From IMG/VR virus record IMGVR_UViG_3300011113_000640, positions 1-64,000 of that record: a stretch of 64,000 bases of DNA. One strand, 5' to 3'. Within the stretch, counting starts at the first letter, position 1, and every line of letters begins with the position of its first letter. This document shows positions 2,560 to 50,097 of the stretch, piece after piece. Made by a program: the position numbers and the translations under genes. Below the pieces are notes generated by a model. That model was not told the DNA's origin, did no database searches, and saw nothing but the letters and a program-made list of their open reading frames with translations.

Positions 2560-3854
2560 CAGTGAAACTGTTCCTCTTCAGTGCTGCCCTTGAGTGCCTG
2601 TGTTGACGCTGTGGCTTCTATGGTGGTGGTCACACGGTCAAAATAGCTGGTTCCTACTTCTCTTTGGTGTTTGACTGCTTCAAAACCTCGCGCACCATCG
2701 GCAAATTCTTTTTGCTGTAGGTCCACAAATGCCGACATGCCATTCCTAGCATAGCCATGAGCCAGATCAAACATGCCGTGATTAAGAGCATGAAAGCCAG
2801 CGAGTGTAATGAATTGAAACTTGTAACCCATAGCTCCAAGTTCACGTTGGAAAACGCTGATTGTTGTATCATCTAAATTCTTCTTCCAGTTAAAAGATGG
2901 CGAGCAGTTGTAGGCCAACATCTTGTTAGGGAATTTGTCATGAATTGCATCGGCAAATTTCTTAGCAAAATCCAGATCTGGCGTGCCTGTCTCGCACCAG
3001 ATCAAATCTGCGTAAGGTGCATAGGCCAGGCCACGACTCACGGCCTGCTCAAAGCCGTTGCGTGTTTCATAGAAACCTTCCACTGTGCGCTCACCGGTCA
3101 GGAAAGGTCGGTCGTTTTCGTCCACGTCACTGGTGACCAATGCGGCTGCTTCGGCATCTGTGCGTGCCAATAATACTGTGGGCACACCCAGCACATCGGC
3201 AGCTAGTCGTGCAGCATTGAGTTTGTTGACAGCTTCGCGGGTGGGAATCAAGACCTTGCCGCCCATGTGACCGCACTTCTTGGCACTGGCCAACTGATCT
3301 TCAAAATGCACACCAGCTGCACCGGCTTCGATCATGGCCTTCATGAGTTCGTAGGCATTTAATACACCACCAAAGCCCGACTCGGCGTCGGCCACTATGG
3401 GCTGGAAAAAGTCCACATCTCCAGAACCTTCCATCCACTGGATCTGATCGGCACGTGCAAATGTGTTGTTGATTTTACGTACCATTTCAGGCACTGAATT
3501 CACGGCGTATAAACTTTGATCAGGATACATTTGTCCTGACGTGTTGGCATCAGCTGCCACTTGCCAACCACTTAGATAAATTCCTTTGAGTCCAGCCTTG
3601 ACCTGTTGCAATGCCTGCATGCCTGTTAGTGCGCCTAGGGTGTTAACATAATCTTCTTCCAACAAGCTCATCCATAGTTTGTTGGCACCACGTTCGGCCA
3701 AGCTGTATTCCACAGGATTGGATCCTTGCAAGTCCACTACCTGTTCGGCGGTGTAGTTGCGTTTGATGTGGTCCCAGCGTGGGTTGCTTTCCCATTCTTT
3801 TCTAATGTGTGTTGCTCGTGCTTTTTTGTTCAACGACATTTTGCTTCCTTTCAA
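2559..3854 (-). CDS. aceA: Isocitrate lyase
   Basis: Full-length 431 aa with [22 protein letters not shown], catalytic [25 protein letters not shown] and HQREVG. Confidence 0.97.
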
Positions 3855-3860
3855 CGGTTA

Positions 3861-4472
3861 TTATTTGCTGATGCTTTCGAATATCGTTTTCTGTTCACGA
3901 TACCATTCCTGCCAGGCCTTTAGTTTTTCTGCGTTTTCGTGGCAGGCTCCGTAGTTTTCGATGACTCGGTCGAGGAGACGACTGGCTTCAATGGCACTGG
4001 GGGTTCCATCAGTTGCGGTGGCACGCTGGGGAACTTGATTGAGACTGGCACTGTCGTGCAAGCTGACAGTGCTACGAGGCAAACTGCACTGAGCATCCAA
4101 CTGCCGACCCGCTGTGTCACGGACGATTTCTCTTGTGATGTATACATTTTCTTTGACCACCTTTACTTTTTCAATTATCTTGGTTTCAATCACAGTGTTG
4201 ACCTGCTGTGACTTCTCTTCTGCGATTCGGACTCGTTGTTTCATTTCTGCTATCTGTTCTCTGTAGCTGATGCCACCCGAGAAATAAGCGGCAATGACTA
4301 AAGCCAACACACCCATTAATTCTGCGGGCAAACGATACTGACCTATGAGTGGTATCCATGACACCAGCTTGCTGGCCACATACAGGATCACACCTGCCCC
4401 AAACAACAGATAGGTCAGCCAGACAAATATGCTGTCAGGTATCAGTTGCAGGAGCCATTGTATCTGCCACAT
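3861..4472 (-). CDS. Rz-like inner-membrane spanin
   Basis: N-terminal TM segments followed by a coiled coil. Lies directly after the endolysin and contains a nested lipoprotein ORF. Confidence 0.75.
   Translation of the reverse strand: MWQIQWLLQLIPDSIFVWLTYLLFGAGVILYVASKLVSWIPLIGQYRLPAELMGVLALVIAAYFSGGISYREQIAEMKQRVRIAEEKSQQVNTVIETKIIEKVKVVKENVYITREIVRDTAGRQLDAQCSLPRSTVSLHDSASLNQVPQRATATDGTPSAIEASRLLDRVIENYGACHENAEKLKAWQEWYREQKTIFESISK
3920..4096 (-). CDS. Rz1-like outer-membrane spanin lipoprotein, nested in Rz
   Basis: MLSAVCLVALSAC lipobox and Pro-rich mature part (KFPSVPPQLMEPPVPLKP), in an alternate frame inside Rz. Confidence 0.75.
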   Translation of the reverse strand: MLSAVCLVALSACTTVPVSIKFPSVPPQLMEPPVPLKPVVSSTESSKTTEPATKTQKN

Positions 4473-5098
4473 CAGTGACCGCCAAATACATGTAGGGCAT
4501 GAGCATAGTGTTTCATCCTATCCTCGAGTCCAATGGTGCCGCCGTTGATTCTTTTTGTCATGGTCAGGATGTCATTGTTGTCAGCATATTGATTCAAGTT
4601 GTTGGTCTCCCAGAACCAGCAGGCACTTTGTACTGCACCTTCAAAGGTTTCCAAGTAAGCACTGGTTTCTTCCACTGGTGTTTCTATTGAATCAGCAAAG
4701 TTTGAGTAGTTGCTCTTGCCTGTGAGCTGGATCAAGCCACGACCGCAGTAACGGAAACCATCGCCGCTCTCTTCAGGACCATTGCCCATTCTGTTGGCAT
4801 AGATCCTGTTGGCTATGGCTTCGGCCTTGTTGGGCAAACCAGCATACTGTTCAGCTAGGGCATCTGTGGGAAAATACTTGGGAAATATCTTTCTTAGACT
4901 TGCGGCACGATAATTGAGATTTTCTTTGAGGAACACAAATCCGCCTGACTCATGGGCGCATTGTGCCAAAAAAGCAGCCACACGCTGTGGAGTGTCAATG
5001 CTGTAGTCAGGCAATAATTTGTTTAGGGCACTGCACCACTGATCGATGTAGGGATTTTTAGGTATGATTTGTGCTAGTTGTTCTCTGGTGATTTCCAT
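4472..5098 (-). CDS. Glycoside hydrolase family 19 endolysin
   Basis: AAFLAQCAHESGGF, LKENLNY, YANRMGN, GRGLIQLTGKSNY, TKRINGG. Confidence 0.93.
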   Translation of the reverse strand: MEITREQLAQIIPKNPYIDQWCSALNKLLPDYSIDTPQRVAAFLAQCAHESGGFVFLKENLNYRAASLRKIFPKYFPTDALAEQYAGLPNKAEAIANRIYANRMGNGPEESGDGFRYCGRGLIQLTGKSNYSNFADSIETPVEETSAYLETFEGAVQSACWFWETNNLNQYADNNDILTMTKRINGGTIGLEDRMKHYAHALHVFGGH

Positions 5099-5205
5099 GG
5101 GTATTCCTTGATGATATCCATATTTAGTTTGCCGCAAGTTGATTTTTTATACATTTTACTCCGCAATGATGATTACAAGTATTTTATCCAGTATTGGTTG
5201 CAAAC

Positions 5206-10748: not shown

Positions 10749-11720
10749 TTATTTCTCTACTTTGATGTTTTTAGCTATGGGTGCAAAGGCTGTGCGTAGT
10801 TCTTCTGCATAGGCCATGACACCACGTGGGTTGAGTTCATCACGGTCTATGATTATATAGTTTTGTTCTGCCCAGTCTTGATATTCTTTGCTTAGTATTG
10901 CTTTAGAGAACTTGTCCACATACCAGTCCACAATGGTGTTTGGTGTCTGTGGTGGCAACACAACTACCCAGCCAGCATAAACTTTGAGTCCTGGAATAGT
11001 GTCACTGAGCAGGGGCACCGTAGGTAATGCTTTTAGTTTAGGTCCACCTGTGAGTCCTATAGTTTTGACTTTGCCTGATTCTATGAGAGGCCGGGCAATG
11101 GCTATGGGCATGATGCCAAATTCAGTGCCGGTTTTGCCGTCGTAGCTGGCCACTGATGTCACTGCCGGCAATGGCCCATTAAAAGCCACGTGTTGTATGA
11201 GCTTGGGATCAGCCTTGGTCTTGGCCATGATGTACTCATAGGCCATACGGTGTGCACCGCCACCCACAGCAATGTTCACAGTTTTACCATTGGTTATGTA
11301 TTTTACAAATTCTTGTGGTGTGTTTACTGCGCTTTTACTTGAGGCTACCAGGACCAGGGGACTCTTGCCCAGGGTTATCACAGGCTTGAAACTGTTGTAT
11401 TCAAACCGCTTGATGTCCTTCTGCCAGATATCGTTTGTGACAAACAGACTCATGTGGCTGGGCACCATTAAATGTAGTCCGTCGCTGGATGCGTTCATGA
11501 ATGCGTTTGATGCCACAGCAGCATCAGCACCAGGTCGTGTTTCAACAGTAAAGGCCACACCTGGGTTTTGATTGGCGACTATTTCGCTGGCTTTGCGAAA
11601 ACTGATTTCATTGCCACTGCCAGGAGCAAATCCAATGGTCGCGTTTACAGGTTTGTTAGGGGCCCATTGCGCCCAGGCCAAAGCAGGCACGACCAATAAG
11701 GTCAGTAATAATTTTTTCAT
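10749..11720 (-). CDS. tctC: Tripartite tricarboxylate transporter substrate-binding protein (TctC/Bug family)
   Basis: Signal peptide, IGFAPGSGNE, VETRPGA, VLASSKS..TPQEF, HVAFNGPLPA, LKALPTVP, GWVVVLPPQTP. Confidence 0.85.
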   Translation of the reverse strand: MKKLLLTLLVVPALAWAQWAPNKPVNATIGFAPGSGNEISFRKASEIVANQNPGVAFTVETRPGADAAVASNAFMNASSDGLHLMVPSHMSLFVTNDIWQKDIKRFEYNSFKPVITLGKSPLVLVASSKSAVNTPQEFVKYITNGKTVNIAVGGGAHRMAYEYIMAKTKADPKLIQHVAFNGPLPAVTSVASYDGKTGTEFGIMPIAIARPLIESGKVKTIGLTGGPKLKALPTVPLLSDTIPGLKVYAGWVVVLPPQTPNTIVDWYVDKFSKAILSKEYQDWAEQNYIIIDRDELNPRGVMAYAEELRTAFAPIAKNIKVEK

Positions 11721-11762
11721 AAAAGTTCCTTTGTGTAAATAGTTATAGAAAATTACAGACAC

Positions 11763-14503: not shown

Positions 14504-15241
14504 TTGAGTAGAAATCGCGCAAGCAAAGCACAAAAGCGTATGAAACAAGTCGAGAACACCATCCAGTTTAACCAAGCCACACCCAAGCAGTACCGTCCAC
14601 GCACTATTGATCTGGTTCCTAGAACCCGTAATCAAGAGCGCCTGGTTTTGGCCTTGCAGGATAGTTCTCAGCACATTGTTGTCACAGTTGGCCCCGCCGG
14701 CACAGGTAAAACTTACTTGGCCATGCAGGCTGCTGTACGAGCCCTACAAGAAGGAACCACAGAACGCATAGTAATGACACGACCTGCAGTGGGAGTAGAA
14801 GATGAACGGCACGGATTCCTGCCGGGCAATCTTGTGGCAAAAATGGAACCATGGACTCGCCCTTTACTGGACGTATTACGCGAGAGTTACCGCCCTCAAG
14901 ACATTAGTGCGATGATTGAGGATCAGGTCATAGAAATAGCCCCCTTGGCATTCATGCGGGGTCGAACGTTCAAGCGGTCGTGGATCATTGCAGATGAAAT
15001 GCAGAATGCCACACCGGCCCAGTGTAAAATGTTGATGACCCGCATAGGTGTGGACTCAAAAATCGTTATCACGGGTGACATTGAACAAGCCGATCGCAGT
15101 CACGGCGACAATGGTCTCATGGACCTGAGTCAACGACTGGGGAAAGGGGGTGTTGAAGGAATTGCTGTGTGCGAGTTACAAGCTCGCGATGTACAGCGAC
15201 ATGCCATTATTGGCAGTGTATTGAAACTTTATTCTGATTGA
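14504..15241 (+). CDS. phoH: PhoH family ATPase
   Basis: GPAGTGKT, TRPAV, GFLPG, FMRGRTF, IIADEMQN, TGDIEQAD, DVQRH. TTG start. Confidence 0.95.
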   Translation: MSRNRASKAQKRMKQVENTIQFNQATPKQYRPRTIDLVPRTRNQERLVLALQDSSQHIVVTVGPAGTGKTYLAMQAAVRALQEGTTERIVMTRPAVGVEDERHGFLPGNLVAKMEPWTRPLLDVLRESYRPQDISAMIEDQVIEIAPLAFMRGRTFKRSWIIADEMQNATPAQCKMLMTRIGVDSKIVITGDIEQADRSHGDNGLMDLSQRLGKGGVEGIAVCELQARDVQRHAIIGSVLKLYSD

Positions 15242-16581: not shown

Positions 16582-17499
16582 TTATATTATAGATTGATTT
16601 TTTGGACAATTATATTGGCAAGCTGACTGTAGATCCAAATTTTGATAAAATTCTACAACCAATTTATCAGCAAGCAACTGGCTGATAGTGGTTTTGGTTA
16701 TGTCGTAACTTTTTTTATTTTTTCCAAATTGATGCTTGTAATAAAATCTATGGTCGGCTACCCAACAACAAGGTGAATAATAGCCATCTGCGGTGATAAA
16801 ATGTTCTCTACCTGTGTTGCACTTGGGTTCGACCTGGGGTATGAGATTTTCTTTTTTCCATCTTTCCATGGAAACGAATCTTTCTCCAATTAACTCGTCA
16901 GATCTGGGCAACAGGTCCAAGGTTTGTTCGTCAAAACGATCACTGGGGTCCAGAAAAAAAGTATCTACCCCTAGTTCTTGAGACATTTTTTTGGCCTGTT
17001 CAACAGTTTCTTCATTGTAAGCAAAAGGAATGTATTTCCATACAGTTTGACAGTTGCTGGCCACACAGGTTTTAATGGCGGTTTGTATGCTGGGCCAGTC
17101 GGCATTTTTTCTATACTGCGTGAAATTATCTGGTGTGCCGTCTATGCTAAATTGCACTACGTCATCTTTATCAAGATACCCGGTCAATTGTTGCCACCAG
17201 CTTTGAGATTGATAACTGCCATTGGTAGTGATCGATATCATGGTTCCTGCTTGCTTGAGCTTGGCCACAAAATTGATCAGATCACTGTGATATATTGGGT
17301 CTCCATAGTTTCCGCAGAGAACCATGCGTTTGCCCGAAAGATCGATATCTAAAAATGACAGCAATAAGTCAATATCAAGATTGTGATTTTTCCAGTGCCC
17401 GGGCCATTGATTGATAAATCTGGTCCTGGCACATCCGGAACATTTGAGAGTGCAGATATTGGTAGGTTCTATGTGGAACCCAGTGATGGTATCAATCAT
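16582..17499 (-). CDS. Radical SAM enzyme with C-terminal SPASM/twitch-like domain
   Basis: Start reset to MIDTIT. CTLKCSGC, GNYGDP, ITTNGS, FSIDG, C..G...DG..SPCC...CQYNC. Confidence 0.9.
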   Translation of the reverse strand: MIDTITGFHIEPTNICTLKCSGCARTRFINQWPGHWKNHNLDIDLLLSFLDIDLSGKRMVLCGNYGDPIYHSDLINFVAKLKQAGTMISITTNGSYQSQSWWQQLTGYLDKDDVVQFSIDGTPDNFTQYRKNADWPSIQTAIKTCVASNCQTVWKYIPFAYNEETVEQAKKMSQELGVDTFFLDPSDRFDEQTLDLLPRSDELIGERFVSMERWKKENLIPQVEPKCNTGREHFITADGYYSPCCWVADHRFYYKHQFGKNKKSYDITKTTISQLLADKLVVEFYQNLDLQSACQYNCPKNQSII

Positions 17500-17500
17500 G

Positions 17501-17785
17501 CTAGGAAGTTTTGTTGATATCTTCTTTGGATAGTTCGTGTCCGTTTTCCTGGAACAAGCGTTCAATGGTGGTTGCATAGTGTTTGTAATAGTAGCTGACA
17601 ATGGTATCCCAATCTTTGGTGGCACTAAGTCCGGCCACGCTACACAACAACACCCGCTGTTCCTTAAAATCCAGGATAACATTGGTCATTTGCCAATCTT
17701 TGCGCCTGAGTCTTTTCGAGATAGTCATGACTTCATCAATCTTGCCCGAAGGTTTAGTGTAGTAGGTTAATAACAGATATCTCAT
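17501..17785 (-). CDS. Hypothetical protein
   Basis: 94-aa ORF packed between its neighbours. Confidence 0.65.
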   Translation of the reverse strand: MRYLLLTYYTKPSGKIDEVMTISKRLRRKDWQMTNVILDFKEQRVLLCSVAGLSATKDWDTIVSYYYKHYATTIERLFQENGHELSKEDINKTS

Positions 17786-18867
17786 ATTAAATTTATTCCT
17801 AAGTAATTGCGATGATCGATGTTGCGTCTTGAATCTAGATCTTTGATGTAGGAACTCAACAAAATTGAATCTCCTGGAGTTAGTATAAGATCAGTGATGT
17901 TATCAATTTTTGTTTTAAAAATTAAATCATTTTGATAAAATCTTGATTGACGAATATTTACAAAATTATCATGTACTGTTTGTTTTATTTCTGGTGGCAA
18001 ATTATTGACCAGTAATGCCCGAGGCTTTGTTAAAATTGACAGAGTCCATTGATGGCACAGGTGTTCTATTTCTTGTAGCCGGTGTAAATTTAAAATACTC
18101 ACAGCATCAACTACTGTGTTAAATTGTATGTTACAGTTGATACTATTTGCCCACTGGAGATTTTCTAAAAATTTTGACCATTTCATTGGCCATCTGTGAT
18201 ATTCATTTATTTTTTCTACACCATCTACGCTGACCGTTAGTGTTAATTTTTTTATTCTTTTTAAAAATTCTTTCAAATTGTCATTGGTCCGGGTTAAATT
18301 AGTGTTTATAACTAGTTCGGGCTGTTGATCCAAGGTTGAAATATATTCTATTAATTGAATGAACTGATCGATAATTAAGGGTTCTCCTCCGGCCAGGTAA
18401 ACTTTTTTCGCCAGTTTTATTTTTTCTAAATCAAGTTTTAATTTACGAGACTTGGAATTTATTCCTAATTCTTTGGCCCAAAGAGAACTTTCGGTTGGAT
18501 TACAGGTAATACATGCCAAGTTGCATTTGTTATCATATCTTATGTCGTAAAAAAATACCTGGCGTGGCGAATCCTCAGTCCACTTTTCTATGTAATCGCT
18601 TACTTCTGCATGTTTTAGCCATCGAGCTGATTCCAAAAGCCTTGGACTAATTACTTGCGATTTTTCAAGATCGTAACATGATTGACAATGGACAATTTTT
18701 TCTCCGTTTTTTATTTTTTTTCTTAGTTCATTTGAACTAACAGAATCTAAATGATCAATTGAAGTAGGACTATAACAGCAAAAACGTTGGGCGTCACCTA
18801 GCGGATAAAATTGTTCAATGAATGGCAAAACACAAAAGGCCGGATTACTCAACCATTTAGTTGACAT
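17782..18867 (-). CDS. Radical SAM enzyme with N-terminal Cys-rich (twitch-like) domain
   Basis: Start reset to MSTKWL. FCVLPF..CC..CQSC, CNLACITC, LAGGEP, NTNL, SVDG. Strongly AT-rich. Confidence 0.9.
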   Translation of the reverse strand: MSTKWLSNPAFCVLPFIEQFYPLGDAQRFCCYSPTSIDHLDSVSSNELRKKIKNGEKIVHCQSCYDLEKSQVISPRLLESARWLKHAEVSDYIEKWTEDSPRQVFFYDIRYDNKCNLACITCNPTESSLWAKELGINSKSRKLKLDLEKIKLAKKVYLAGGEPLIIDQFIQLIEYISTLDQQPELVINTNLTRTNDNLKEFLKRIKKLTLTVSVDGVEKINEYHRWPMKWSKFLENLQWANSINCNIQFNTVVDAVSILNLHRLQEIEHLCHQWTLSILTKPRALLVNNLPPEIKQTVHDNFVNIRQSRFYQNDLIFKTKIDNITDLILTPGDSILLSSYIKDLDSRRNIDHRNYLGINLI

Positions 18868-19775
18868 AGTTCTACCAAGGTTGCACTCAAGTTGATTTCC
18901 TGGTCGGCCACCAAGGGAACATTGACCAAGCCGTTGCGTATGATTATGATGGCCTGATCCTGCCGTTCTGGATCCTTGGCCCACAAGTCCAGGTTGTCAT
19001 ACATCCAGCGGAATATGTCATCGGCTTCTTCGGGAGTGCTTGATTGGCAAATCAATGTTCTGGCTTCTTTGATTTTTCCGTCTTTGAACAGTTGCACACA
19101 GTCCAGTTTCCAATCTCCTGCGGCCTTGTCGGCTGAGCTGGGTGGCACCAGATGACCTGTGGTGCTGTTCTGTTGAGTCAAGTTTAGGCATTTGCGTAGA
19201 TCTGGATAAGTGGCTCGCACGTAGCTGTCAAGAGTATCAATGTCAAATTCCACCTGTTCAGTGACCAGTACCGTGGCCACTCGAGCAGTGAATTCCACCT
19301 GATCAGTTTTGACTATGTGCAGTTGTTGACAACGACTGTGTATGGGTGGAATGATCTTGTTGGGATAGTTACAGGTCAAGATGAATCTCACATGATCACT
19401 GTAGTCTTCCATGAGATTGCGTAGTGCCGGTTGCACACTTTGTGGATTCATGTAGTCAGCTTCGTCGATCAGCACAACCTTGAACGCACCAAAAGGCATG
19501 GTCTGGCAAAATGAAATCAGTTTGTCCACCCACTCGATCTTTCTAGCTTCTTTAGATCCATTGGCCCACATCACATCATATTCGTCGATACCCAGCTCAT
19601 TGATCAGCATTTTGGCCAAGGTGGTCTTGCCTGTGCCAGGGCCACCTGAAAACAACAAGTGCGGAATACTTTTTTCTTTGATCCAACTTTCAACCAGGGT
19701 TCTTTGATTGTGATCCACAAACACATAACCGTCTGCAGTTTTGGGACGGTATTTTTCTACCCAAAGTTCTTTCAT
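18849..19775 (-). CDS. Sliding-clamp loader AAA+ subunit (RFC/T4 gp44-like)
   Basis: WVEKYRP, GPGTGKTT, IDEAD, FILTCN, PIHSRC, YPDLRK. Confidence 0.95.
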   Translation of the reverse strand: MKELWVEKYRPKTADGYVFVDHNQRTLVESWIKEKSIPHLLFSGGPGTGKTTLAKMLINELGIDEYDVMWANGSKEARKIEWVDKLISFCQTMPFGAFKVVLIDEADYMNPQSVQPALRNLMEDYSDHVRFILTCNYPNKIIPPIHSRCQQLHIVKTDQVEFTARVATVLVTEQVEFDIDTLDSYVRATYPDLRKCLNLTQQNSTTGHLVPPSSADKAAGDWKLDCVQLFKDGKIKEARTLICQSSTPEEADDIFRWMYDNLDLWAKDPERQDQAIIIIRNGLVNVPLVADQEINLSATLVELCQLNG

Positions 19776-35181: not shown

Positions 35182-35496
35182 TTACTTGAACAGGATCATG
35201 GCCATGATCACGGCCTGCAACATAAAGCCCATGCCAATTGTGACAATGTTCAGCATGTCTTTGAGTACCACGGCCCGGGCAAACAACAACACCAAGCCAG
35301 TCCACATGAACAGCACTATGTCTAGATTGGGCACAGTGTCAGACAGTCCTGTGAGCAAGGCCAACAGCGTGGGTATGGTGGCACAGTGTATGACTACTAC
35401 TGCCAACCAACCCAGGGTTTCAGCACTTACTTTGGGCCAGTGTTGATCTAACCAGGTTCTTAAAGAATTGAGTAAAACGTCTAATTTGATTATCAT
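35182..35496 (-). CDS. Three-TM membrane protein
   Basis: Hydrophobic helices. Confidence 0.7.
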   Translation of the reverse strand: MIIKLDVLLNSLRTWLDQHWPKVSAETLGWLAVVVIHCATIPTLLALLTGLSDTVPNLDIVLFMWTGLVLLFARAVVLKDMLNIVTIGMGFMLQAVIMAMILFK

Positions 35497-36053
35497 ATTT
35501 TGTCCGCATAAAAGATGTGTCTCCCAAATTTAGCTACCTGTGGTTTGCCCCACTGGGGTTTGACATAGTCTGCGTGAAAATACAAGGCGTTCTTCACGCT
35601 GGGCAAACGGAATCCTTCTAAGAGGACTTTTTTGGCCACTTCTTCTGACTCTTTCCAGTGCGCCGGATAGATGGGTCGTACCTTGCTGGATCCATCACAG
35701 AACCACGAGAACTGACAAATTACCTTGTCGTAGACCACGTTCTTTTGATAAACCACTCCGCAGATGTCTGAAGCAAACCGGCCGGATTCCACACGGTTGA
35801 TGGTGACCTGTGCCACGGCTACCTTGCCTTCAAAAGGTTCAGTAGCACTTTCCCAGTAGATGTTTCTTGTGAGACAATCCAATTGTTTGGCACGATCTGC
35901 AGCACTGATAAAACCTTGACGTGCTACTTCGTTGGATGCTCTAAGGGCATCAAGTTTGGAATCGGTAACTGAAATCACTGCCAGGGCCACGGCCACAAAA
36001 CTAGCGAATTTTACTGCGGTACTACCCAAGTTAAACTTTGAAGATGTCTTCAA
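35493..36053 (-). CDS. Cell wall hydrolase, SleB/Hydrolase_2 family
   Basis: CLTRNIYWES..GKVAVAQVTINRV..CQFSW..ALYFHADYVKPQW..FGRHIFY. TTG start after AAAGGAG. Confidence 0.92.
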   Translation of the reverse strand: MKTSSKFNLGSTAVKFASFVAVALAVISVTDSKLDALRASNEVARQGFISAADRAKQLDCLTRNIYWESATEPFEGKVAVAQVTINRVESGRFASDICGVVYQKNVVYDKVICQFSWFCDGSSKVRPIYPAHWKESEEVAKKVLLEGFRLPSVKNALYFHADYVKPQWGKPQVAKFGRHIFYADKI

Positions 36054-41086: not shown

Positions 41087-41114
41087 AAAAAAGCCCTATT
41101 TTACTAGGGCTTTT
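41087..41114. terminator. Rho-independent terminator (bidirectional shape)
   Basis: AAAAAAGCCCTA-TTTTAC-TAGGGCTTTT. Confidence 0.8.
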
Positions 41115-41125: not shown

Positions 41126-41851
41126 TTAGACAACAGAACCAGCCCAGGGCGTGGTCGACAACCATTTCTTATAGATACTGTCAGCTGTGGTCTGATGCTG
41201 TGCCAAATGATACGGTAAACCTGCCAGCATGGAGATTTTGTCCTGTACGGTTTCATACAGCGATCTTGATTCAGCCCATTTGGCATCATCTTCTGCCACC
41301 CAGCTCTGCATTTTGGTTTCCGTGATTTCAATGTGGAACTGCATGGCCAGATGTGGACCCATGGCCCAGGCCTGATTGGGGCATACTGGGCTGGTAGCCA
41401 CTCGCACTGCACCTGCAGGTATGCCAAACGATTCATAGTGCCAATGCGCCACGGTGTTGGTGGGGGTGTCTCCAAACCACTCTCGAGCCACGTCTAGATT
41501 TTCATATTGGATGGGTTGCCATCCTATCTCTGGTTGAGCACTAGGACCTATAGTTGCACCCAGGGCACGGCTCATAAGTTGTCCACCTAGACAATGTCCA
41601 ACCACCGGACGATCCAAGCGCATGGCCTGCAGGATAAGGATTTCTGCTTGACGATTACTGAGCAAAGGATCATTGGCACTCATGCCACCGCCCATGACAG
41701 CCAGGGCCGAGTAAGGTTCTATACTAGCAGGAAACTCTTCATCGGCGCCAGCATTGAATATGACATAGTCAACACGATGCCGCTCCAACCATGTGGTTAG
41801 ATAAGCGGCATTTTCGGGTAGTTGATGTTGTAAGATTGCTACTGGTCGCAT
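41126..41851 (-). CDS. Class I glutamine amidotransferase (GMP-synthase-like GATase1)
   Basis: MGGGMSAND, GHCLGGQLM, HWHYE, QFHIE (Cys-His-Glu triad). Confidence 0.9.
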   Translation of the reverse strand: MRPVAILQHQLPENAAYLTTWLERHRVDYVIFNAGADEEFPASIEPYSALAVMGGGMSANDPLLSNRQAEILILQAMRLDRPVVGHCLGGQLMSRALGATIGPSAQPEIGWQPIQYENLDVAREWFGDTPTNTVAHWHYESFGIPAGAVRVATSPVCPNQAWAMGPHLAMQFHIEITETKMQSWVAEDDAKWAESRSLYETVQDKISMLAGLPYHLAQHQTTADSIYKKWLSTTPWAGSVV

Positions 41852-41878: not shown

Positions 41879-42886
41879 TTATTTTTTGATCAAAGCCCAC
41901 TGCTCGCTACGGATGCGATCTGTGACTGCCTTGGGCAGGGGAACATAGTCTAGATCAAGAGCACTTTTACCACCCTTGTCCCAAGCATAAGCAAAGAACT
42001 TGAGTACTTCTTGTGTGGCTTTGACGTCTTTGGGTTCACGATATACCAACACAAACGTGGCACCAGTGATGGGCCAAGCATCAGCACCCTTTTGATTCAC
42101 CAGGCTGATACCCATGCCCGGTGTTTTAAACCAGTCAGCGTCCTTGGCAGCTGCGGCAAAAGTCGTGTCATCGGGTTGCACGTATCGTCCATCACGATTC
42201 TGCATCTTCACGTGAGGAATGTTGTTTTTCTTGGCATAGGCATATTCCACATAGCCAATCGAACCTTTCACACGGTTGACCACAGCGGACACACCTTCAT
42301 TGCCCTTGCCACCCACGGCTGTGGCTGGAATCCATTTTACAGCGGCACCTTTGCCCATGCGTTCAGCCCAGGACTTGGATACTTCGTTCAAATAGTCTGT
42401 GAAGATAAATGTTGTGCCGGATCCATCAGCACGATGCACCACAGTGATTGGCAAGTCGGGCAAGGTCTTGCCAGGATTCAAGGCCGCAATCCGAGCATCG
42501 TTCCACTTGGATATAGTTCCAAGATAGATGTCTGCCAAGACTGCGCCTGTGATCTGTAGTTCACCAGGTTTGAAACCATCAAGGTTTATGATAGGAACCA
42601 CACCGCCCAACACAGTGGGGAACTGGATCAAGCCGGCCTGGGCTAGATCTGCTACATTCATGGGTGCATCAGTGGCACCAAAGTGAACTGTGCCAGCACG
42701 GATCTGCTTGATACCGCCCGAGCTACCAATGCTCTGATAGTTGAGCTTGACACCGGTGATTTTTTGATAATCCACTGACCATTGCGAGTAGATGGGAAAT
42801 GGGAATGTGGCACCTGCTCCTGTGATTTCCACAGCAGACACCGAAGTCGCTAATACAGTCAATACAGCGGCTAAAAACTTTTTCAT
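41879..42886 (-). CDS. pstS: Phosphate ABC transporter substrate-binding protein
   Basis: GAGATFPFP, YQSIGSSGG, FGATDAP, HRADGSGTT, GGKGNEGV, IGYVEYAYA, WPITGATF. Confidence 0.97.
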   Translation of the reverse strand: MKKFLAAVLTVLATSVSAVEITGAGATFPFPIYSQWSVDYQKITGVKLNYQSIGSSGGIKQIRAGTVHFGATDAPMNVADLAQAGLIQFPTVLGGVVPIINLDGFKPGELQITGAVLADIYLGTISKWNDARIAALNPGKTLPDLPITVVHRADGSGTTFIFTDYLNEVSKSWAERMGKGAAVKWIPATAVGGKGNEGVSAVVNRVKGSIGYVEYAYAKKNNIPHVKMQNRDGRYVQPDDTTFAAAAKDADWFKTPGMGISLVNQKGADAWPITGATFVLVYREPKDVKATQEVLKFFAYAWDKGGKSALDLDYVPLPKAVTDRIRSEQWALIKK

Positions 42887-42930
42887 TGGATCTCCTTGAT
42901 AGTTGTTGTGCGAAGGCACACGTTTACTTA

Positions 42931-42959
42931 ATTACAATTTTGTTACAGTTTTATGACAT
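42931..42959 (-). promoter_or_regulatory. Pho box (PhoB site), three 11-bp-spaced repeats
   Basis: Minus strand ATGTCAT-AAAA-CTGTAAC-AAAA-TTGTAAT versus the E. coli consensus CTGTCAT-A(A/T)A(T/A)-CTGTCA(C/T), directly upstream of pstS. Confidence 0.85.
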
Positions 42960-42987
42960 GTCCGGTTACGGCTCCGGCGACACCTGA

Positions 42988-43995
42988 TCATTGTGCCCGA
43001 TTCACTTCTACTAAATTGTCACGGAATATGCGCCAACATGCGTCCCAGGTCCAACGCAGGCTGGCCTGTTCTACCTGGTCACGATCCAAGGTCAAGCAAC
43101 GTTCCACGGCATGTGCCAGGTTCCAGTCTAGATATCCCGTCACACCCGACTCCACTATGTCTATGGGCCCGGGCACAGGATATGCTGCCACCGGAGTGCC
43201 GCAGGCCAGGGCTTCGATGTTGACCACACCAAAGGTATCAGCTCGGCTGGCGAACACAAACACATCGGCCTGTGCATAGTAGCCGGCCAACTCCAGACCA
43301 CGCTGTGCGCCCACAAATTCCACTGTGGGATATCTGCGTTCCAATTCGGCTCGATAAGGACCATCTCCCACTATGATTTTGCGACACCAAGGCATGTCCA
43401 GCCGACAAAAATCTTCCAGACCTTTTTCACGACTCACACGACCTACGCTGAGCAGTACAGGTCGTACGTTTGAGCCAGATCGTAAACTACTGCTAAAGTA
43501 GGTGCGGTCCACACCGCGAGTCCAGACTTGAAGATTCTCAAAGCCACGAGCTGTTAACTCTTGCTCGATGCTGGCGGTTGTGACCAACACACGTTGACTA
43601 TTTTTGTGGAACCACTGCAGATACCACCAAGTCCACGACTCTGGAACATGATACATGCGTTTCAAAAACTTGGCAAAGTCTGTGTGGTAACTTGTATTGT
43701 AAGGAACACAGTTACGTTCGCACCACCAGCGGGCAAAGAAACCTACCGGACCTTCTGTAGCGATGTGTATAAAGTCTGGACGTAGCGTCTTAATTTTTTT
43801 GCTGATACCGTGCGGCCAGCACAGACGAACTTCAGGATAACCAGGGCAAGCAAAATTAGGGAACTGAGAGGGATCAACATAAACAACACGATAGCCGTCA
43901 CGGTCAGCATGATCTTCCAAGTTCCGGAAAGTTGTGACCACACCGTTGATTTGACCGGGCACATTGTCAGTTATGATCAGGATCGTTTTTGACAT
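42988..43995 (-). CDS. GT4 glycosyltransferase, Agt-like glycolipid (MGDG/GADG) synthase
   Basis: QINGVVTT, YPEVRL, HIATEGPVG, TSYHTDF, WTRGVD, VGRVSREKG, VGDGP, DTFGVVNIEALACGTPVAA. Confidence 0.85.
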   Translation of the reverse strand: MSKTILIITDNVPGQINGVVTTFRNLEDHADRDGYRVVYVDPSQFPNFACPGYPEVRLCWPHGISKKIKTLRPDFIHIATEGPVGFFARWWCERNCVPYNTSYHTDFAKFLKRMYHVPESWTWWYLQWFHKNSQRVLVTTASIEQELTARGFENLQVWTRGVDRTYFSSSLRSGSNVRPVLLSVGRVSREKGLEDFCRLDMPWCRKIIVGDGPYRAELERRYPTVEFVGAQRGLELAGYYAQADVFVFASRADTFGVVNIEALACGTPVAAYPVPGPIDIVESGVTGYLDWNLAHAVERCLTLDRDQVEQASLRWTWDACWRIFRDNLVEVNRAQ

Positions 43996-44150
43996 GACGT
44001 GACTACCTTGAAACTGTCAAACTTGAGCCAATAGGCCACCGTGGCCTGTGCTCGCACGCATTCTGCTTCGGTGGCAAACTCAATGCTTGCTCTTCCGGGC
44101 ACGTCTTGAGGATTGTTCACGTGAACTGCTATCAACATCAGCAACCACAT
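43977..44150 (-). CDS. 57-aa hypothetical protein between plcP and agt
   Basis: Hand translation MWLLMLIAVHVNNPQDVPGRASIEFATEAECVRAQATVAYWLKFDSFKVVTSCQKRS. Overlaps both neighbours. Confidence 0.5.
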   Translation of the reverse strand: MWLLMLIAVHVNNPQDVPGRASIEFATEAECVRAQATVAYWLKFDSFKVVTSCQKRS

Positions 44151-44904
44151 CATCTGTCTCCTTGGTCCATGTAACTATTTCCCACTGTCCTGAATGATGT
44201 TCAACTAGGGCTGTCATTGACTCAACCCAGTCTCCATCGTTCATGTAGACTACACCATCTATTTCTTTGATTTCTGCGTGGTGGATGTGTCCGCATATAA
44301 CACCATCGAATCCACGCTTCTTGCAGTACGCGGCAAGATTACGTTCGAACTGAAACAAAAAGTCACTAGCTTTCTTGACTTTGTATTTGAGATATTTGCT
44401 TAGACTCCAGTAGCCCAAGCGTAGTCGACGACGCACAGCATTAAATTGTGAATTTAGATTCAATACAAAATCATACAGTTTATCACCTAAAAATGCCAGC
44501 CATGGTGCCAATCTGGTGATGCCGTCAAACAAGTCACCGTGTGTGACTAGATAGTGTCGACCGTCTACGCCAATGTGTTCTGCTTGATTTACAACTTCGA
44601 TTAGGCCAAATCCAATGCCCAATGGTATAAGTGGTCTTAGAAATTCATCATGATTGCCAGCCACATAGATTACTCTGGTACCACGTTTGGCATGCCCCAT
44701 TACTCTACGGATCACATTGGTATGGCTCTGTTTCCAACGCCATCGGTTCTGTTGTATTTTCCAGGCGTCAATGATATCACCTACAAGATAAAGTGTTTCG
44801 CAGGTGTGGTGTTTGAGAAAGTTGTTGAGTTGTTCAGCCTTGCAGTCCTTGGTACCAAGGTGTACATCTGAAATGAATATTGATCTGTAAGTGCGGCCCG
44901 TCAT
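44080..44904 (-). CDS. plcP: Calcineurin-like metallophosphoesterase, PlcP-type phospholipase C (often mis-annotated as UDP-2,3-diacylglucosamine hydrolase)
   Basis: YRSIFISDVHLG, LVGDIID, GNHDE, HGDLFD, WLAFLGD..Y, GYWSLS.YLK.KVK.A..F..FE, DGVICGHIH, YMNDGDWVES.TALVE. Confidence 0.85.
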   Translation of the reverse strand: MTGRTYRSIFISDVHLGTKDCKAEQLNNFLKHHTCETLYLVGDIIDAWKIQQNRWRWKQSHTNVIRRVMGHAKRGTRVIYVAGNHDEFLRPLIPLGIGFGLIEVVNQAEHIGVDGRHYLVTHGDLFDGITRLAPWLAFLGDKLYDFVLNLNSQFNAVRRRLRLGYWSLSKYLKYKVKKASDFLFQFERNLAAYCKKRGFDGVICGHIHHAEIKEIDGVVYMNDGDWVESMTALVEHHSGQWEIVTWTKETDDVVADVDSSSREQSSRRARKSKH

Positions 44905-44925
44905 GCATTATTTACAGGCCCGTGT

Positions 44926-44943
44926 GTTACAGTTGTGTTACGA
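44926..44943 (-). promoter_or_regulatory. Pho-box-like tandem repeat upstream of plcP
   Basis: Minus strand TCGTAAC-ACAA-CTGTAAC with an 11-bp period, followed by TAAATA and ATG 44904. Confidence 0.6.
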
Positions 44944-45243
44944 CAGTCGCATCACTGCCATGAGTGCTTCGTTGGCATCCCAGAACACCCAATACCAGCG
45001 TTGATGTGTGTCGTTGTCTAGAAACACGGGTTCGGCTCTGTAGCGTAGGGCTCGGATGTCCGCATCCATGGCTTCCCATGTTGACCAGGCAAAACCACGC
45101 AAGCCCACACGTCGGTTGCGGTCCACGGGATCAACTACCAGCACTGACGCTGGTGGATTGTCGTAGTAACGATCTACCTGTTTTTGTTTTTCGTAATAGG
45201 GAATATGGCGTTCAAGCCATGTGGGCCAGTCTACAACTTGCAT
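44938..45243 (-). CDS. Hypothetical protein
   Basis: 101-aa ORF. Confidence 0.6.
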   Translation of the reverse strand: MQVVDWPTWLERHIPYYEKQKQVDRYYDNPPASVLVVDPVDRNRRVGLRGFAWSTWEAMDADIRALRYRAEPVFLDNDTHQRWYWVFWDANEALMAVMRLS

Positions 45244-45444
45244 TCACTTGCGACCCCAGGCAATATGTGCCCAAAGACGATCATACAGGTAGTAGGATGT
45301 CATCCAAACACAGTTGATGATGATGGTGGGAATAAGAGCCTCTGTCATGCTTTGACCTGTGACCAACAACATCACATAGGTGCTGAGGATCACCCAGCAC
45401 CTGTAGATCAAAGTTTTGACAAGAGTCCTTGTTCGTGTTTCCAA
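45244..45444 (-). CDS. Small membrane protein, DUF2061-like
   Basis: ETRTRTLVKTLIYR..YYLYDRLWAHIAWG. Confidence 0.7.
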   Translation of the reverse strand: METRTRTLVKTLIYRCWVILSTYVMLLVTGQSMTEALIPTIIINCVWMTSYYLYDRLWAHIAWGRK

Positions 45445-45446
45445 GA

Positions 45447-45884
45447 TTACTGATCGGCCTTGTGAGCTGCCAAAGTCTTGGTGAACTTGTTGGCGTGTGA
45501 GCGTTCTGCCTTGGCCAGGGTCTCAAACCAGTCAGCGATTTCGTCAAAGCCTTCGTCACGTGCTTCCTTGGCCATGCCAGGATACATGTCACTGTATTCA
45601 TGGGTCTCGCCATGGATAGCAGCTTCAAGAGCTTCTGCAACGGTCTTGGCGCTCATGCCTGTACCTGGCTCGCCAGCACCACCAGTGATCAAATACTCCA
45701 TGTGACCATGGGCATGACCTGTTTCACCTTCAGCAGTTGAGCGGAATACACTTGCTACATCTGGTGCACCTGCTACGTCGGCCATGTTTGCGAAATACAA
45801 ATAACGACGATTTGCCTGGCTCTCGCCCGAAAATGCCGCTTTCAAGTTTTCTTCTGTGCGTGTTCCTTTTACGCTTTTTGCCAT
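45447..45884 (-). CDS. Rubrerythrin (short form without rubredoxin domain)
   Basis: [39 protein letters not shown] di-iron motifs. Confidence 0.93.
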
Positions 45885-46050: not shown

Positions 46051-47724
46051 ATGAACAGCAGATACGACGAACTAGAAATCCTAATCTCAAAATTTACACG
46101 ACCACTCCCCGATCTTCCAGCATACGCCCAGCGTCTTGAAGAAGAATTAGAAATCATAGCCAATCTTAACTTCGCAAAACATTTTTTGCGTGTGAGAGAA
46201 ATCCTGGATCTCACCCGCGACATACCACACATCACCCGAGGATCAGCCGGAAGCAGTCTGCTATGCTGGCTCATGGGCATTTCAGATGTGGATCCCATAG
46301 CTGAACGCATACCCTTGTCAAGGTTCATGAATCCCAAGCGAGATGACCTTCCCGACATTGATCTAGACTTTCCACACTGGCAACAGGAAACTGTGATGAA
46401 CAGAATATTCCGGCGGTGGCCTGGGCAGAGTGCCAGAGTATCAAACTATGTGATGTATAAAGAAAAATCAGCCCGGCGTGAAGCTGCCAAACGCATGGGG
46501 GCCAAAGGCAAATTAAAACGTAATTTTAAATTTGAAGAAGTAGTTCCGGACTATGTGGAAGATGCTGAACGACTCACACAAAAACTCCTGGGCAAGAAAC
46601 GTTGCATATCCAAACACTGTGGTGGCATCTTGATCTTTGACCGTGCAGTGCCTAAAAGTTTAATCAATGGCACCAACCAAATACTCTTGGACAAGTATGA
46701 GATAGAAGATCTCGAACATTTTAAAATAGACATCCTAGCCAATCGCGGACTCAGCCAGCTGTGGGAAATAGAGGAGCGAGACCTGCTGGACTATCCTGAA
46801 TACGATGAGGCTACAGCAGAACTTTTGTGTCGCGGCGATGTGTTGGGTGTAACACAAGCAGAAAGCCCAGCCATGAAAAGACTAGTAAAAGCCATCAAGC
46901 CTAAAAGTCGTAGTGACTGTGTGCTGGCCACGGCACTCATACGTCCTGTGGCTACCATGGGTCGCAGACGTGCTAGTGCTTTCCAAGACTGGTCAACGGA
47001 TCAGCTACAGGATACCATAGTGTTTGAGGATGATGCCATAGAGCTGATCTCGGAAATCCTGGGTTGTGATCAATACACCGCGGACATGTGGCGCAGAGCC
47101 TTTGCCAAGAAAGATGAAGAAAAGATCTTTGAGTTTATGGTGCTTGTGGGTGACCATCCCAAGAAAGAAGAAATATTCCTAGCTCTGCGTGAACTCAGTC
47201 ACTTTGGCCTGTGTAGGGCACATGCCATAAATCTTGGTAGACTGATCTGGGCCTTGGCCTACCAAAAAGCACACAATCCTGAAGCGTTCTGGCGTGCGGC
47301 CCTGAAACACTGCCAAGGATCGTATGCTCGCTGGGTCTACTGGCAAGAAGCCAAGCTGGCCGGTGCTGTGCCTGCTATCATCGAGGGCGGCGAAGTGGCC
47401 GAACTGAGAACCAATGGTCGTTGGAGCAGTCGAAGGTTTATTCCGGCCTGCCAAGAACGTCGTGGCCCGGGCACGGTGGAGTTCTGTGGACTCGTGGCCA
47501 ACTATAGGGTGTTTAAGGCCGACAAAAAGAAATACATAACATTTGTTACACTGGGCACCGGCAATGGTCGATATTTGGATGTGATTGTGCCGCATGCGAT
47601 TTCGTTCCATGATCAACCAATCTTGTGGGGTCAGGGCAAATTGGGGTATAAAAATAATTCGGAATATGTTACAGTGTATAAACACAAGCGTCTAGACTTA
47701 AAGGACATAGAACACTATCAATGA
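46051..47724 (+). CDS. Compact DnaE-like (Pol III alpha family) DNA polymerase lacking the PHP domain
   Basis: TRGSAGSS, RFMNPKRDDLPDIDLDF, KHCGG, FKIDIL, QAESP, ALIRP, CRAHA; OB-like C-terminus. Confidence 0.85.
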   Translation: MNSRYDELEILISKFTRPLPDLPAYAQRLEEELEIIANLNFAKHFLRVREILDLTRDIPHITRGSAGSSLLCWLMGISDVDPIAERIPLSRFMNPKRDDLPDIDLDFPHWQQETVMNRIFRRWPGQSARVSNYVMYKEKSARREAAKRMGAKGKLKRNFKFEEVVPDYVEDAERLTQKLLGKKRCISKHCGGILIFDRAVPKSLINGTNQILLDKYEIEDLEHFKIDILANRGLSQLWEIEERDLLDYPEYDEATAELLCRGDVLGVTQAESPAMKRLVKAIKPKSRSDCVLATALIRPVATMGRRRASAFQDWSTDQLQDTIVFEDDAIELISEILGCDQYTADMWRRAFAKKDEEKIFEFMVLVGDHPKKEEIFLALRELSHFGLCRAHAINLGRLIWALAYQKAHNPEAFWRAALKHCQGSYARWVYWQEAKLAGAVPAIIEGGEVAELRTNGRWSSRRFIPACQERRGPGTVEFCGLVANYRVFKADKKKYITFVTLGTGNGRYLDVIVPHAISFHDQPILWGQGKLGYKNNSEYVTVYKHKRLDLKDIEHYQ

Positions 47725-49077: not shown

Positions 49078-49637
49078 AATACAAGATGTTCAAAGTAATT
49101 GTAATGCTTTTCTAGAGTCCATGTCAATGGATCAACAGCCGTTCCGTCATGTGTTTGATATGTTGCTTGAAACACATTGGTATAGCGCAGAAACGGCAAC
49201 CACATGTTGGGAGTTTTGGCTGCCCAACCAGCATCTTTGAGTGCCATGTGTTTGGCACGGCTCAATCTCACTGTGGGCGCATTGAGAGCTTGATCAACTG
49301 TGATACAATCGGCCAGCAATAAGTCACGAATCCTAGCCGCCGGAATCAAGTGTTCAAAATCGCACTCGTCGTCGGCCCCAATTTCGTGATAGTGTGCTTT
49401 CATGCCATCACGCTGCTGGATACAGTATTCGTGATATCTGCGCAGGCTGTCATCGATGTCGTTGCGAATTTCGCGCAGGAGTTGTTGATCATTTTCCACG
49501 GCATGATATTCGTTGACAAATTGACCTAGCTTGCCACGACAACGATTGGCCACGGTTCGATAAGTTTCGGGACTGCGTTGGGTCTTGCCGTAGACCGGAG
49601 CTACAAATTTTTCAAGCGATTCTTTTAACTGGTTCAT
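49074..49637 (-). CDS. Hypothetical protein with EHxxP (possible HNH/DUF1524-like) motif
   Basis: CDFEHLIPA...NAPTVRLS...H. Confidence 0.55.
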   Translation of the reverse strand: MNQLKESLEKFVAPVYGKTQRSPETYRTVANRCRGKLGQFVNEYHAVENDQQLLREIRNDIDDSLRRYHEYCIQQRDGMKAHYHEIGADDECDFEHLIPAARIRDLLLADCITVDQALNAPTVRLSRAKHMALKDAGWAAKTPNMWLPFLRYTNVFQATYQTHDGTAVDPLTWTLEKHYNYFEHLVL

Positions 49638-50097
49638 GGTATTCTTCCTCGTCGTTGTCGGATTCTAGAAAATTAAACATTCGATGAAACGCTTCAGTCT
49701 TTTGAATCTGATTGTTTAGTGATTTTTTAATTCTTTGACCATTTATCTTGTGCTTTTGATTGTTGTAATCTCCAGATCTGCGTCCTTTGTGTTTGTGACA
49801 CATTGGGCATAATTCATCTAAGTTATCAGGATTGTTGTTTTCTCGGTCACCGTCTTTGTGATCAACTTCGGTCATTCCTACAGCCCAAGGAGATTTTTCA
49901 TAGTCAATGCAACATGGAAATCCCAAATGACCATCATGGTTGCTACATTTACCTTGTTTCCAAGGTGTTACTCCAGGTGCATGTGCATGCTTGCCGTAAC
50001 TGGCCCCTTGACAATGTCCGCAATGAACTCTCCAACGTTTTCCATCATGTGCTTGCGGCTTTCCACAACCAGGATTAATACATATTCCTCTGGACAC
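49612..50097 (-). CDS. HNH endonuclease
   Basis: EVDHKDGDRENNNPDNLDELCPMCH and CxxC pairs. Confidence 0.85.
   Translation of the reverse strand: MSRGICINPGCGKPQAHDGKRWRVHCGHCQGASYGKHAHAPGVTPWKQGKCSNHDGHLGFPCCIDYEKSPWAVGMTEVDHKDGDRENNNPDNLDELCPMCHKHKGRRSGDYNNQKHKINGQRIKKSLNNQIQKTEAFHRMFNFLESDNDEEEYHEPVKRIA

Follow-up and report, generated by a model that had tools for sequence, protein, structure and literature searches.

Phage-borne genes related to phosphate-starvation membrane lipid remodelling in a 320-kb uncultured phage

Why should a phage carry genes resembling those with which phosphate-starved bacteria exchange their membrane phospholipids for sugar lipids? The question is raised by three adjacent genes in a window of 64,000 nucleotides, which corresponds to bases 1-64000 of IMGVR_UViG_3300011113_000640, a contig of 320,541 bp. 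A sequence-only reading of this window had proposed a PlcP-type metallophosphoesterase, an Agt-type GT4 glycosyltransferase and PstS, with Pho-box repeats before plcP and pstS and with phoH elsewhere in the window, and had inferred that the phage mines the host membrane for phosphorus while glycolipids keep the envelope intact, with possible effects on superinfection. The aim of this study was to examine whether these assignments hold and what the genes might do. All three genes were found at the expected positions, on the minus strand and co-oriented, and every part of that reading that could be tested computationally came out as predicted, whereas phosphorus mining for genome synthesis, envelope integrity and superinfection effects remain inferences. 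The features of the region are as follows.

44938..45884 (-), conserved upstream neighbours, syntenic with plcP in the closest relatives: an ORF of 101 aa (44938-45243), a DUF2061-like ORF (45244-45444) and rubrerythrin (45447-45884)
44926..44943 (-), Pho-box-like pair of heptamers (TCGTAAC-ACAA-CTGTAAC) directly upstream of plcP, overlapping the stop codon of the upstream ORF
44909..44914 (-), TAAATA element, -10-like, 4 nt before the plcP ATG
44080..44904 (-), plcP, PlcP-type Mn-metallophosphoesterase (phospholipase C of lipid remodelling), 274 aa
42988..43995 (-), agt, Agt/GTcp-type GT4 diacylglycerol glycosyltransferase, 335 aa, starting 84 nt downstream of plcP
42931..42959 (-), Pho box of three 11-bp-phased heptamers (ATGTCAT-AAAA-CTGTAAC-AAAA-TTGTAAT) upstream of pstS
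41879..42886 (-), pstS, periplasmic high-affinity phosphate-binding protein with a Sec signal peptide, 335 aa
41126..41851 (-), class-I glutamine amidotransferase-like gene, the last gene before the stem-loop, of unknown role in the module and found only in this phage among the loci compared
41089..41114 (strand not assigned), perfect 10-bp stem-loop flanked by A and T runs, likely a bidirectional terminator ending the transcription unit
14504..15241 (+), phoH (PF02562, 229 bits), 30 kb away and not part of the cluster

We first asked whether the metallophosphoesterase is a PlcP or an LpxH. The protein matches the Pfam families Metallophos (PF00149) and Metallophos_2 (PF12850). It is 56.8% identical to the Pseudomonas aeruginosa PA3219 orthologue, 51.4% to the SAR11 (Pelagibacter) orthologue and 46.8% to the Sinorhizobium meliloti orthologue, while these three share only 46.6-48.7% with each other, and the published figures for characterised PlcPs are 46-51% (PMC8528852, PMC9239053). 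In contrast, it is 23.8% identical to Escherichia coli LpxH over 122 aa and fails both LpxH equivalog cut-offs, with scores of 47.5 against a cut-off of 134 (NF003743) and 36.3 against 190 (TIGR01854). In the phylogenetic tree the phage clade (98/96 support) is one lineage among the Sm, Pa, SAR11 and Comamonadaceae PlcP lineages. LpxH sits apart, although on a saturated branch and as the only LpxH outgroup. The metal-binding motifs DxH, GDxxD, GNHD/E, H and GHxH are invariant, the residues D13, H15, G42, D43, D46, G83, N84, H85, H122, G205, H206 and H208 being conserved in 35-37 sequences. An AF2 model (pLDDT 79.6) predicts an LpxH-like fold with a helical insertion at 123-196, and its seven best PDB matches are LpxH-lipid complexes.

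The second gene encodes a GT4 protein with Glyco_transf_4 (PF13439) and Glycos_transf_1 (PF00534) domains. It is 39.9% identical to P. aeruginosa Agt1 and 39.6% to Pelagibacter Agt, which share 40.9% with each other, whereas that clade is under 25% identical to other GT4 enzymes (PMC8231724). All 14 residues shown to be essential by mutagenesis in SAR11 GTcp are conserved (G16, G82, G85, H104, T162, R163, R190, K195, D256, T257, F258, G259, E264 and W320), including the His104-Asp256 dyad, the UDP-sugar residues and the diacylglycerol-binding residues T162, R163 and W320. The numbering was transferred through a 334-aa Pelagibacter orthologue and not through HTCC7211 itself. The motifs read GRVSREKG and FASRADTFG, against the consensus GRVAxEKN and FPSxTDTFG.

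The third gene passes the PstS equivalog models, with 409.5 bits against a cut-off of 339 for NF008171 and 364.8 against 205 for TIGR00975, and matches phrog_5385. The ORF extends from 41879 to 42919, but the start is almost certainly the ATG at 42886 and not the GTG at 42919, since this ATG follows AAGGAGA and opens a Sec signal peptide (MKKFLAAVLTVLATSVSA, then VEITGAGATFP). The mature N-terminus contains GAGATFP.

We next examined the Pho boxes. The repeat upstream of pstS holds the only two exact matches to TGTMAY-N4-YTGTMAY in the 64 kb on either strand. The pair upstream of plcP has one mismatch, and the plcP box announced by the sequence-only reading is thus imperfect in this phage. The total count in the window, 6 against 3.5 expected, is not significant by itself, but the positions and the conservation in other phages are. 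The same architecture is present within 100 nt upstream of plcP in 44 of 69 unique viral loci (64%), against 52 of 17,962 background windows (0.3%), an enrichment of more than 200-fold, and 18 of 19 unique phage pstS genes have such a box. The ORFs that sit behind such boxes in the viral loci are plcP (65), pstS (17) and a phoX. No Shine-Dalgarno sequence precedes plcP, and its mRNA is probably leaderless. TAAATA is carried by 61 of 88 unique phage plcP upstream regions, and lies 4-6 nt before the ATG in most of these. A sigma-70 consensus scan of the region was not informative (8 sites found against 7.0 expected).

To determine how widespread the module is, we searched IMG/VR and obtained at least 260 matches, eleven of the fetched ones lying on contigs over 200 kb. 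Among 56 loci, plcP is followed by a GT4 gene in 32, by a GT2/GT21-type glycosyltransferase gene in 22 and by a split GT4 in one, and one has none. PstS, which the sequence-only reading had placed in the system, is a frequent but not constant member, being linked in 13 of the 56 loci. The plcP-then-agt order is also seen in over 40 SAR11 genomes and in P. aeruginosa. The dN/dS values are 0.05-0.16, indicating purifying selection. The window further contains endolysin genes (4472-5137 and 35493-36053), a clamp loader, a virion protein, ThyX, an HNH endonuclease and many ORFans. A megablast search of 41-46 kb against 50,697 deposited phage genomes found no match, and the phage has no close sequenced relative. 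PHROG and Pfam scans of the three largest ORFs (825-1096 aa) gave nothing useful, and no tRNA genes that might help to assign a host were found in the window.

Taken together, these data are best explained by a virus-encoded copy of the bacterial PlcP-Agt membrane lipid-renovation pathway, joined to pstS and wired to the phosphate-starvation regulator of the host, which is unknown. We estimate the probability of this reading at about 0.72, the enzyme identities being well supported, whereas PhoB binding, the enzymatic products and the benefit to phage yield are inferred in the absence of biochemical or expression data for any phage copy. In the proposed mechanism, host PhoB~P would bind the Pho boxes in front of plcP and pstS in a phosphate-starved infected cell and switch the genes on. 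PlcP, a cytoplasmic Mn-dependent metallophosphoesterase, would remove the phospho-head group from PE, PG or PC, yielding diacylglycerol and a phosphorylated head group that re-enters the soluble phosphorus pool. Agt would transfer glucose or glucuronate from a UDP-sugar to the diacylglycerol, and the resulting phosphorus-free glycolipids (MGDG/GADG) would keep the bilayer intact, while secreted PstS would raise high-affinity phosphate capture through the host PstCAB transporter. The net effect would be that lipid phosphorus and external phosphate are diverted to nucleotide synthesis for a very large phage genome while the cell stays intact until lysis. However, PlcP releases phospho-head groups and not orthophosphate, and no dedicated phosphatase is seen next to the module in this phage. 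Furthermore, a host that already owns plcP-agt would have remodelled its lipids before infection, which would make the phage copy partly redundant. Phosphorus mining for phage DNA is plausible rather than established.

Phosphorus limits both bacterial growth and phage production in many lakes and ocean regions. A 320-kb genome needs about 640,000 phosphorus atoms per copy, and membrane phospholipid, one of the few sizeable phosphorus pools in a starved cell besides nucleic acids, may hold 10^6 to 10^7 molecules per cell by our order-of-magnitude estimate, enough for a few to some tens of such genomes. If phages actively convert that pool, models of viral production under phosphorus stress would need a new term, as would lipid-based markers of phosphorus limitation (MGDG/GADG, plcP transcripts) and AMG catalogues. 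Viral 'lpxH' hits now filed under LPS biosynthesis (PMC9611531, PMC10653327) may belong to this family and would then need re-reading. In a broader reading, which we consider about as likely as not, large freshwater phages and at least one cultured SAR11 phage may carry their own PhoB-wired 'viral Pho regulon', with plcP plus a GT4 or GT2/GT21 glycosyltransferase as its core, often with pstS and sometimes with phoX. Host membrane phospholipid would then be a phosphorus reserve for phage DNA, and hosts lacking the capability would gain it. This would be a class of auxiliary metabolic gene so far hidden under the LpxH label in viral gene catalogues.

Among the alternatives, the one that survives best, although we consider it unlikely, is that the enzymes are as stated but that the selected benefit is envelope change rather than phosphorus supply. 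Glycolipid-rich membranes might alter receptors and block superinfection, change sensitivity to antimicrobial peptides or grazers, or simply keep a starving host alive through a long jumbo-phage latent period. Lipid remodelling changes phage adsorption, membrane proteome, polymyxin sensitivity and grazing susceptibility in bacteria (PMC9804370, PMC8528852, PMC9457565), and the pairing of nearly every phage plcP with a glycosyltransferase shows that the glycolipid product, and not only the released phosphorus, is under selection. On the other hand, linkage to pstS and, in one instance, to phoX, with shared Pho boxes, ties the module to phosphorus economy, and the cultured pelagiphage Mosig carries plcP without any glycosyltransferase, so that head-group release alone can be selected.

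A role in lysis or phage structure is more doubtful still. PlcP might weaken the inner membrane late in infection, or supply diacylglycerol or glycolipid for a phage-made membrane compartment, since a phospholipase could in principle assist lysis and some jumbo phages appear to build lipid-bound early compartments. Pho-box control, pairing with a bilayer-preserving glycosyltransferase, linkage to pstS and phoX and the distance from the endolysin genes argue against it.

That the metallophosphoesterase is an LpxH acting with its partner on lipid A or LPS precursors is largely refuted. JGI, GenBank and PGAP all name this family UDP-2,3-diacylglucosamine hydrolase, and LpxH gives the best PDB matches by sequence and by fold. 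However, PGAP gives the same name to the PA3219 and SMc00171 orthologues, and those two genes are the experimentally shown PlcPs in PAO1 and S. meliloti 1021 (PMC8528852, PMC9239053), so the label carries no information. The similarity to LpxH covers less than half the length of the protein, whereas that to the PlcP orthologues is full-length, and the partner is a diacylglycerol-type GT4, not LpxB. Finally, although all three genes have cellular homologues and IMG/VR contains some false positives, a chimeric assembly or mis-called viral contig is very improbable, since GC content is unremarkable across the module, the genes share strand and spacing with flanking phage genes, the phage plcP genes form their own clade with no cellular sequence above 57% identity, the module with its neighbours (rubrerythrin, the 101-aa ORF) recurs on many independent viral contigs, and a cultured phage carries a homologue.

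Among the closest known systems is the bacterial PlcP-Agt lipid-remodelling operon (P. aeruginosa PA3219-PA3218, SAR11 HTCC7211 PB7211_983/PB7211_960, S. meliloti SMc00171, Agrobacterium tumefaciens Atu2297), with which the phage locus shares gene order, an upstream Pho box and the catalytic and diacylglycerol-binding residues, at the level of identity that the characterised members share with each other. It differs in being carried by a virus, in the separate phage plcP clade, in a promoter with TAAATA 4-6 nt before the ATG and no ribosome-binding site, and in that pstS is fused into the cluster. In addition, many related phages replace the GT4 with a 238-aa GT2/GT21-type enzyme that has no homologue in the cellular loci examined or in the window.

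The phosphate-stress auxiliary genes of cyanophages (pstS, phoA, phoH), which are probably induced through the host PhoR/PhoB system (Sullivan et al. 2010; Zeng and Chisholm 2012), are likewise virus-borne Pho-regulon genes that appear to be controlled by the host regulator through Pho boxes, and pstS is shared. The PstS described here is of the proteobacterial type, being 54% identical to enterobacterial PstS and 37% to cyanophage PstS. The new element is membrane-lipid renovation, which none of the papers that we could search attributes to phages.

Pelagibacter phage Mosig EXVC030M (MT647606, genes 119/120) is a cultured phage with a plcP homologue, 49.8% identical and in the same phage plcP clade, divergently adjacent to pstS and lying between baseplate genes. 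It has no glycosyltransferase, and its gene is annotated 'putative UDP-2,3-diacylglucosamine hydrolase' and is not discussed in the genome announcement. The candidate boxes in its intergenic region are of the TTTAACA type and are not statistically significant by themselves; SAR11-type boxes (TTAAYA-N4-YTTAAYA) before Mosig and Pelagibacter plcP sit at the expected places, but are not significant in such AT-rich DNA. Its host, HTCC1062, lacks plcP (PMC4796936).

LpxH, the UDP-2,3-diacylglucosamine diphosphatase of lipid A synthesis, belongs to the same metallophosphoesterase superfamily, with the same predicted fold and a helical lipid-binding insertion, but it differs from the phage enzyme in sequence, in its genomic partner and in its regulation.

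On the minus strand of the first 64 kb of IMGVR_UViG_3300011113_000640, a 320,541-bp viral contig, three tightly spaced and co-oriented ORFs were found in the interval 41879-44943, to which the sequence-only reading had assigned a plcP - agt - pstS system. These ORFs and other features of the window are the following.

2559-3854, minus strand: isocitrate lyase of 431 aa (PF00463, 355 bits), which may be a glyoxylate-shunt auxiliary gene
10749-11762, minus strand: TctC/Bug-type periplasmic solute-binding protein (PF03401)
14504-15241: phoH
16582-18984, minus strand: two adjacent radical-SAM proteins, one with a SPASM domain, beside the clamp loader gene
41089-41114: perfect stem-loop, which closes the unit together with the following gene
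41126-41851: class-I glutamine amidotransferase gene
42886, minus strand: ATG start codon of pstS (NCBIfam NF008171, 409.5 bits against a cut-off of 339)
42988-43995, minus strand: GT4 glycosyltransferase of 335 aa (Glyco_transf_4 plus Glycos_transf_1)
43996-44079, minus strand: 84-nt plcP-agt spacer holding a short GC palindrome (GGCCAC-G-GTGGCC), which could be a processing or attenuation site
44080-44904, minus strand: metallophosphoesterase of 274 aa (Pfam Metallophos)
46051-47724, plus strand, and 49612-50097, minus strand: DnaE, present only as a 557-aa piece (NTPase and finger domains), with an HNH endonuclease nearby

Inspection of the DNA sequence showed that pstS almost certainly starts at the ATG at 42886 and not at the GTG at 42919, since this ATG follows AAGGAGA and opens a Sec signal peptide followed by the mature PstS N-terminus.

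We first examined whether the region is phage DNA. The window contains an endolysin, a T4-type clamp loader, a virion protein, ThyX, an HNH endonuclease, the DnaE fragment and many large ORFs without any family match. The polymerase gene may be split, and its best deposited relative, with 36% identity, is a 484-kb uncultured phage (LR756508). The GC content across the module is like that of its surroundings. A pattern scan of IMG/VR identified 260 viral stretches encoding a relative of the metallophosphoesterase. The 80 that were kept are 75-100% identical, and eleven of the contigs fetched exceed 200 kb. The closest relatives share the neighbouring genes for rubrerythrin and a 101-aa ORF. In addition, the cultured myovirus Mosig, a Pelagibacter phage, has a homologue (49.8% identical) lying divergently from pstS between baseplate genes. 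Host contamination was therefore rejected.

The family is labelled LpxH in the sources consulted, but several results contradict this label. The protein scored only 47.5 and 36.3 bits against the two LpxH equivalog models, whose cut-offs are 134 and 190, respectively, and it is 23.8% identical to E. coli LpxH over 122 residues. For comparison with PlcP, the SMc00171 and PA3219-PA3218 orthologues were obtained from the PLSDB collection, from record CP090106.1, which is labelled 'pSymB' but is 3.72 Mb long and so appears to be a mislabelled S. meliloti chromosome, and from P. aeruginosa fragments. The P. aeruginosa orthologue is recognisable by the adjacent adenylate cyclase, and the 46.6% identity between the two genes matches the published 46% (PMC8528852). 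Over its full length the phage protein is 56.8% identical to the P. aeruginosa orthologue, 51.4% to the Pelagibacter orthologue and 46.8% to the S. meliloti orthologue, whereas these three share 46.6-48.7% with each other. PGAP names the PA3219 and SMc00171 orthologues (L171:3456-5320 and L172:3465-4310 among our extracted loci) 'UDP-2,3-diacylglucosamine diphosphatase', although these two genes are the PlcPs shown experimentally in PAO1 and strain 1021 (PMC8528852, PMC9239053), so that the name carries no weight.

In a maximum-likelihood tree the phage sequences, including that of Mosig, form one supported clade (98/96), which is one lineage among the S. meliloti, P. aeruginosa, SAR11 and Comamonadaceae lineages, while LpxH lies on a saturated branch. 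A distant member of the family (33-34% identical), also annotated as LpxH, is carried by the freshwater cyanophage Synechococcus phage S-SRM01 (L167:3998-4702), where it sits next to psbA fragments and homing endonucleases, and it lies on a very long branch of the tree. All metal-binding motifs are invariant. An AlphaFold model (pLDDT 79.6) predicts the metallophosphoesterase core with a helical insertion at 123-196, and its seven best PDB matches are LpxH structures, as expected for a lipid-handling relative.

In more than 40 SAR11 genomes the plcP homologue is followed at once by a 334/335-aa glycosyltransferase about 40% identical to that of the phage, and this is the operon whose products were characterised in HTCC7211 (PMC4796936, PMC8231724). 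The phage glycosyltransferase is 39.9% identical to P. aeruginosa Agt1 and 39.6% to Pelagibacter Agt, which share 40.9% with each other, and this clade is less than 25% identical to other GT4 enzymes (PMC8231724). All 14 residues whose mutation inactivated GTcp are conserved, including the His104-Asp256 dyad and the diacylglycerol-binding T162, R163 and W320, with the residue numbering transferred through a Pelagibacter orthologue. Some related phage glycosyltransferases carry Glu at position 256, a substitution that lowers GTcp activity, so these variants may use another donor.

We further analyzed the sequences upstream of the genes. Three 11-bp-phased heptamers, ATGTCAT-AAAA-CTGTAAC-AAAA-TTGTAAT, lie upstream of pstS (42931-42959) and provide the only exact matches to TGTMAY-N4-YTGTMAY in the window, and TCGTAAC-ACAA-CTGTAAC lies upstream of plcP (44926-44943). 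Across unique viral loci, such a box was found within 100 nt of 44 of 69 plcP genes (20 of them exact), compared with 52 of 17,962 background windows, and 18 of 19 pstS genes have one. Of 111 distinct ORFs lying behind a box, 65 are plcP and 17 are pstS. One is a Tat-signal PhoX alkaline phosphatase (PF05787, 411 bits) on the viral contig IMGVR_UViG_3300046804_003658 (L117:3223-9002), where phoX is followed by pstS, a small ORF, plcP and agt, and where phoX and the small ORF each sit behind an exact match to the Pho box. This island looks like a compact viral Pho regulon. Two recurrent small ORF families (L063:9930-10268, L069 and L117:6820-7074; L049:4057-4515, L029 and L036) also sit behind Pho-box-like repeats near the module. 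One begins MKLEM and the other is a secreted protein of about 150 aa, and neither has a Pfam match. The motif is specific to classical Pho-regulon genes and is not a general phage promoter. Of 88 plcP upstream regions, 61 carry TAAATA within 30 nt of the ATG, mostly 4-6 nt before it and without a Shine-Dalgarno sequence, suggesting, by inference only, a leaderless transcript.

Among 56 unique viral loci with enough downstream sequence, 32 have the Agt-type GT4, one has a split GT4 and one has none. In the other 22 (L015:8910-9623, L028:8901-9617, L036:8749-9459 and 19 further loci) plcP is directly followed by a 238-aa GT2/GT21-type glycosyltransferase (PF00535 about 70 bits; PF13506 above its cut-off), which has no homologue in the cellular plcP loci examined. 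PstS lies within 4.5 kb in 13 loci. Two loci (L032:5792-6490 and L044:10240-10941) add a fatty-acid desaturase 1.3 kb downstream of plcP-GT2, a further membrane-lipid gene in the same neighbourhood. Both plcP and agt are under purifying selection, with dN/dS of 0.05-0.16. The conserved core is therefore a phospholipase C plus a glycosyltransferase, which argues that the glycolipid product matters, and not only head-group release.

The best-supported reading is that of a viral copy of the lipid-renovation pathway under the control of host PhoB, which would free phospholipid phosphorus and keep the bilayer intact with glycolipid, while PstS would raise phosphate uptake. In this reading the enzyme identities rest on strong homology evidence, but PhoB binding, the reaction products and the gain in phage yield are inferred. 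The PstS type (54% identical to enterobacterial PstS), the CTGTAAC-type boxes and the Bug/TctC-type binding protein point to a proteobacterium as the host, without further precision. The TctC/Bug family is probably greatly expanded in Betaproteobacteria, which is a weak hint about the host.

No description of a phage plcP or of virus-encoded phosphate-stress lipid remodelling was found in full-text searches of about 8.4 million papers, and neither the Mosig genome note nor the pelagimyophage survey mentions it. Viral 'lpxH' is listed as an LPS-biosynthesis AMG in Lake Baikal and Mediterranean surveys, and these hits may belong to the family studied here. The enzymes themselves and the idea of Pho-regulon AMGs are both known, and what is new is their combination in phages, together with its own promoter architecture and two alternative glycosyltransferase partners.
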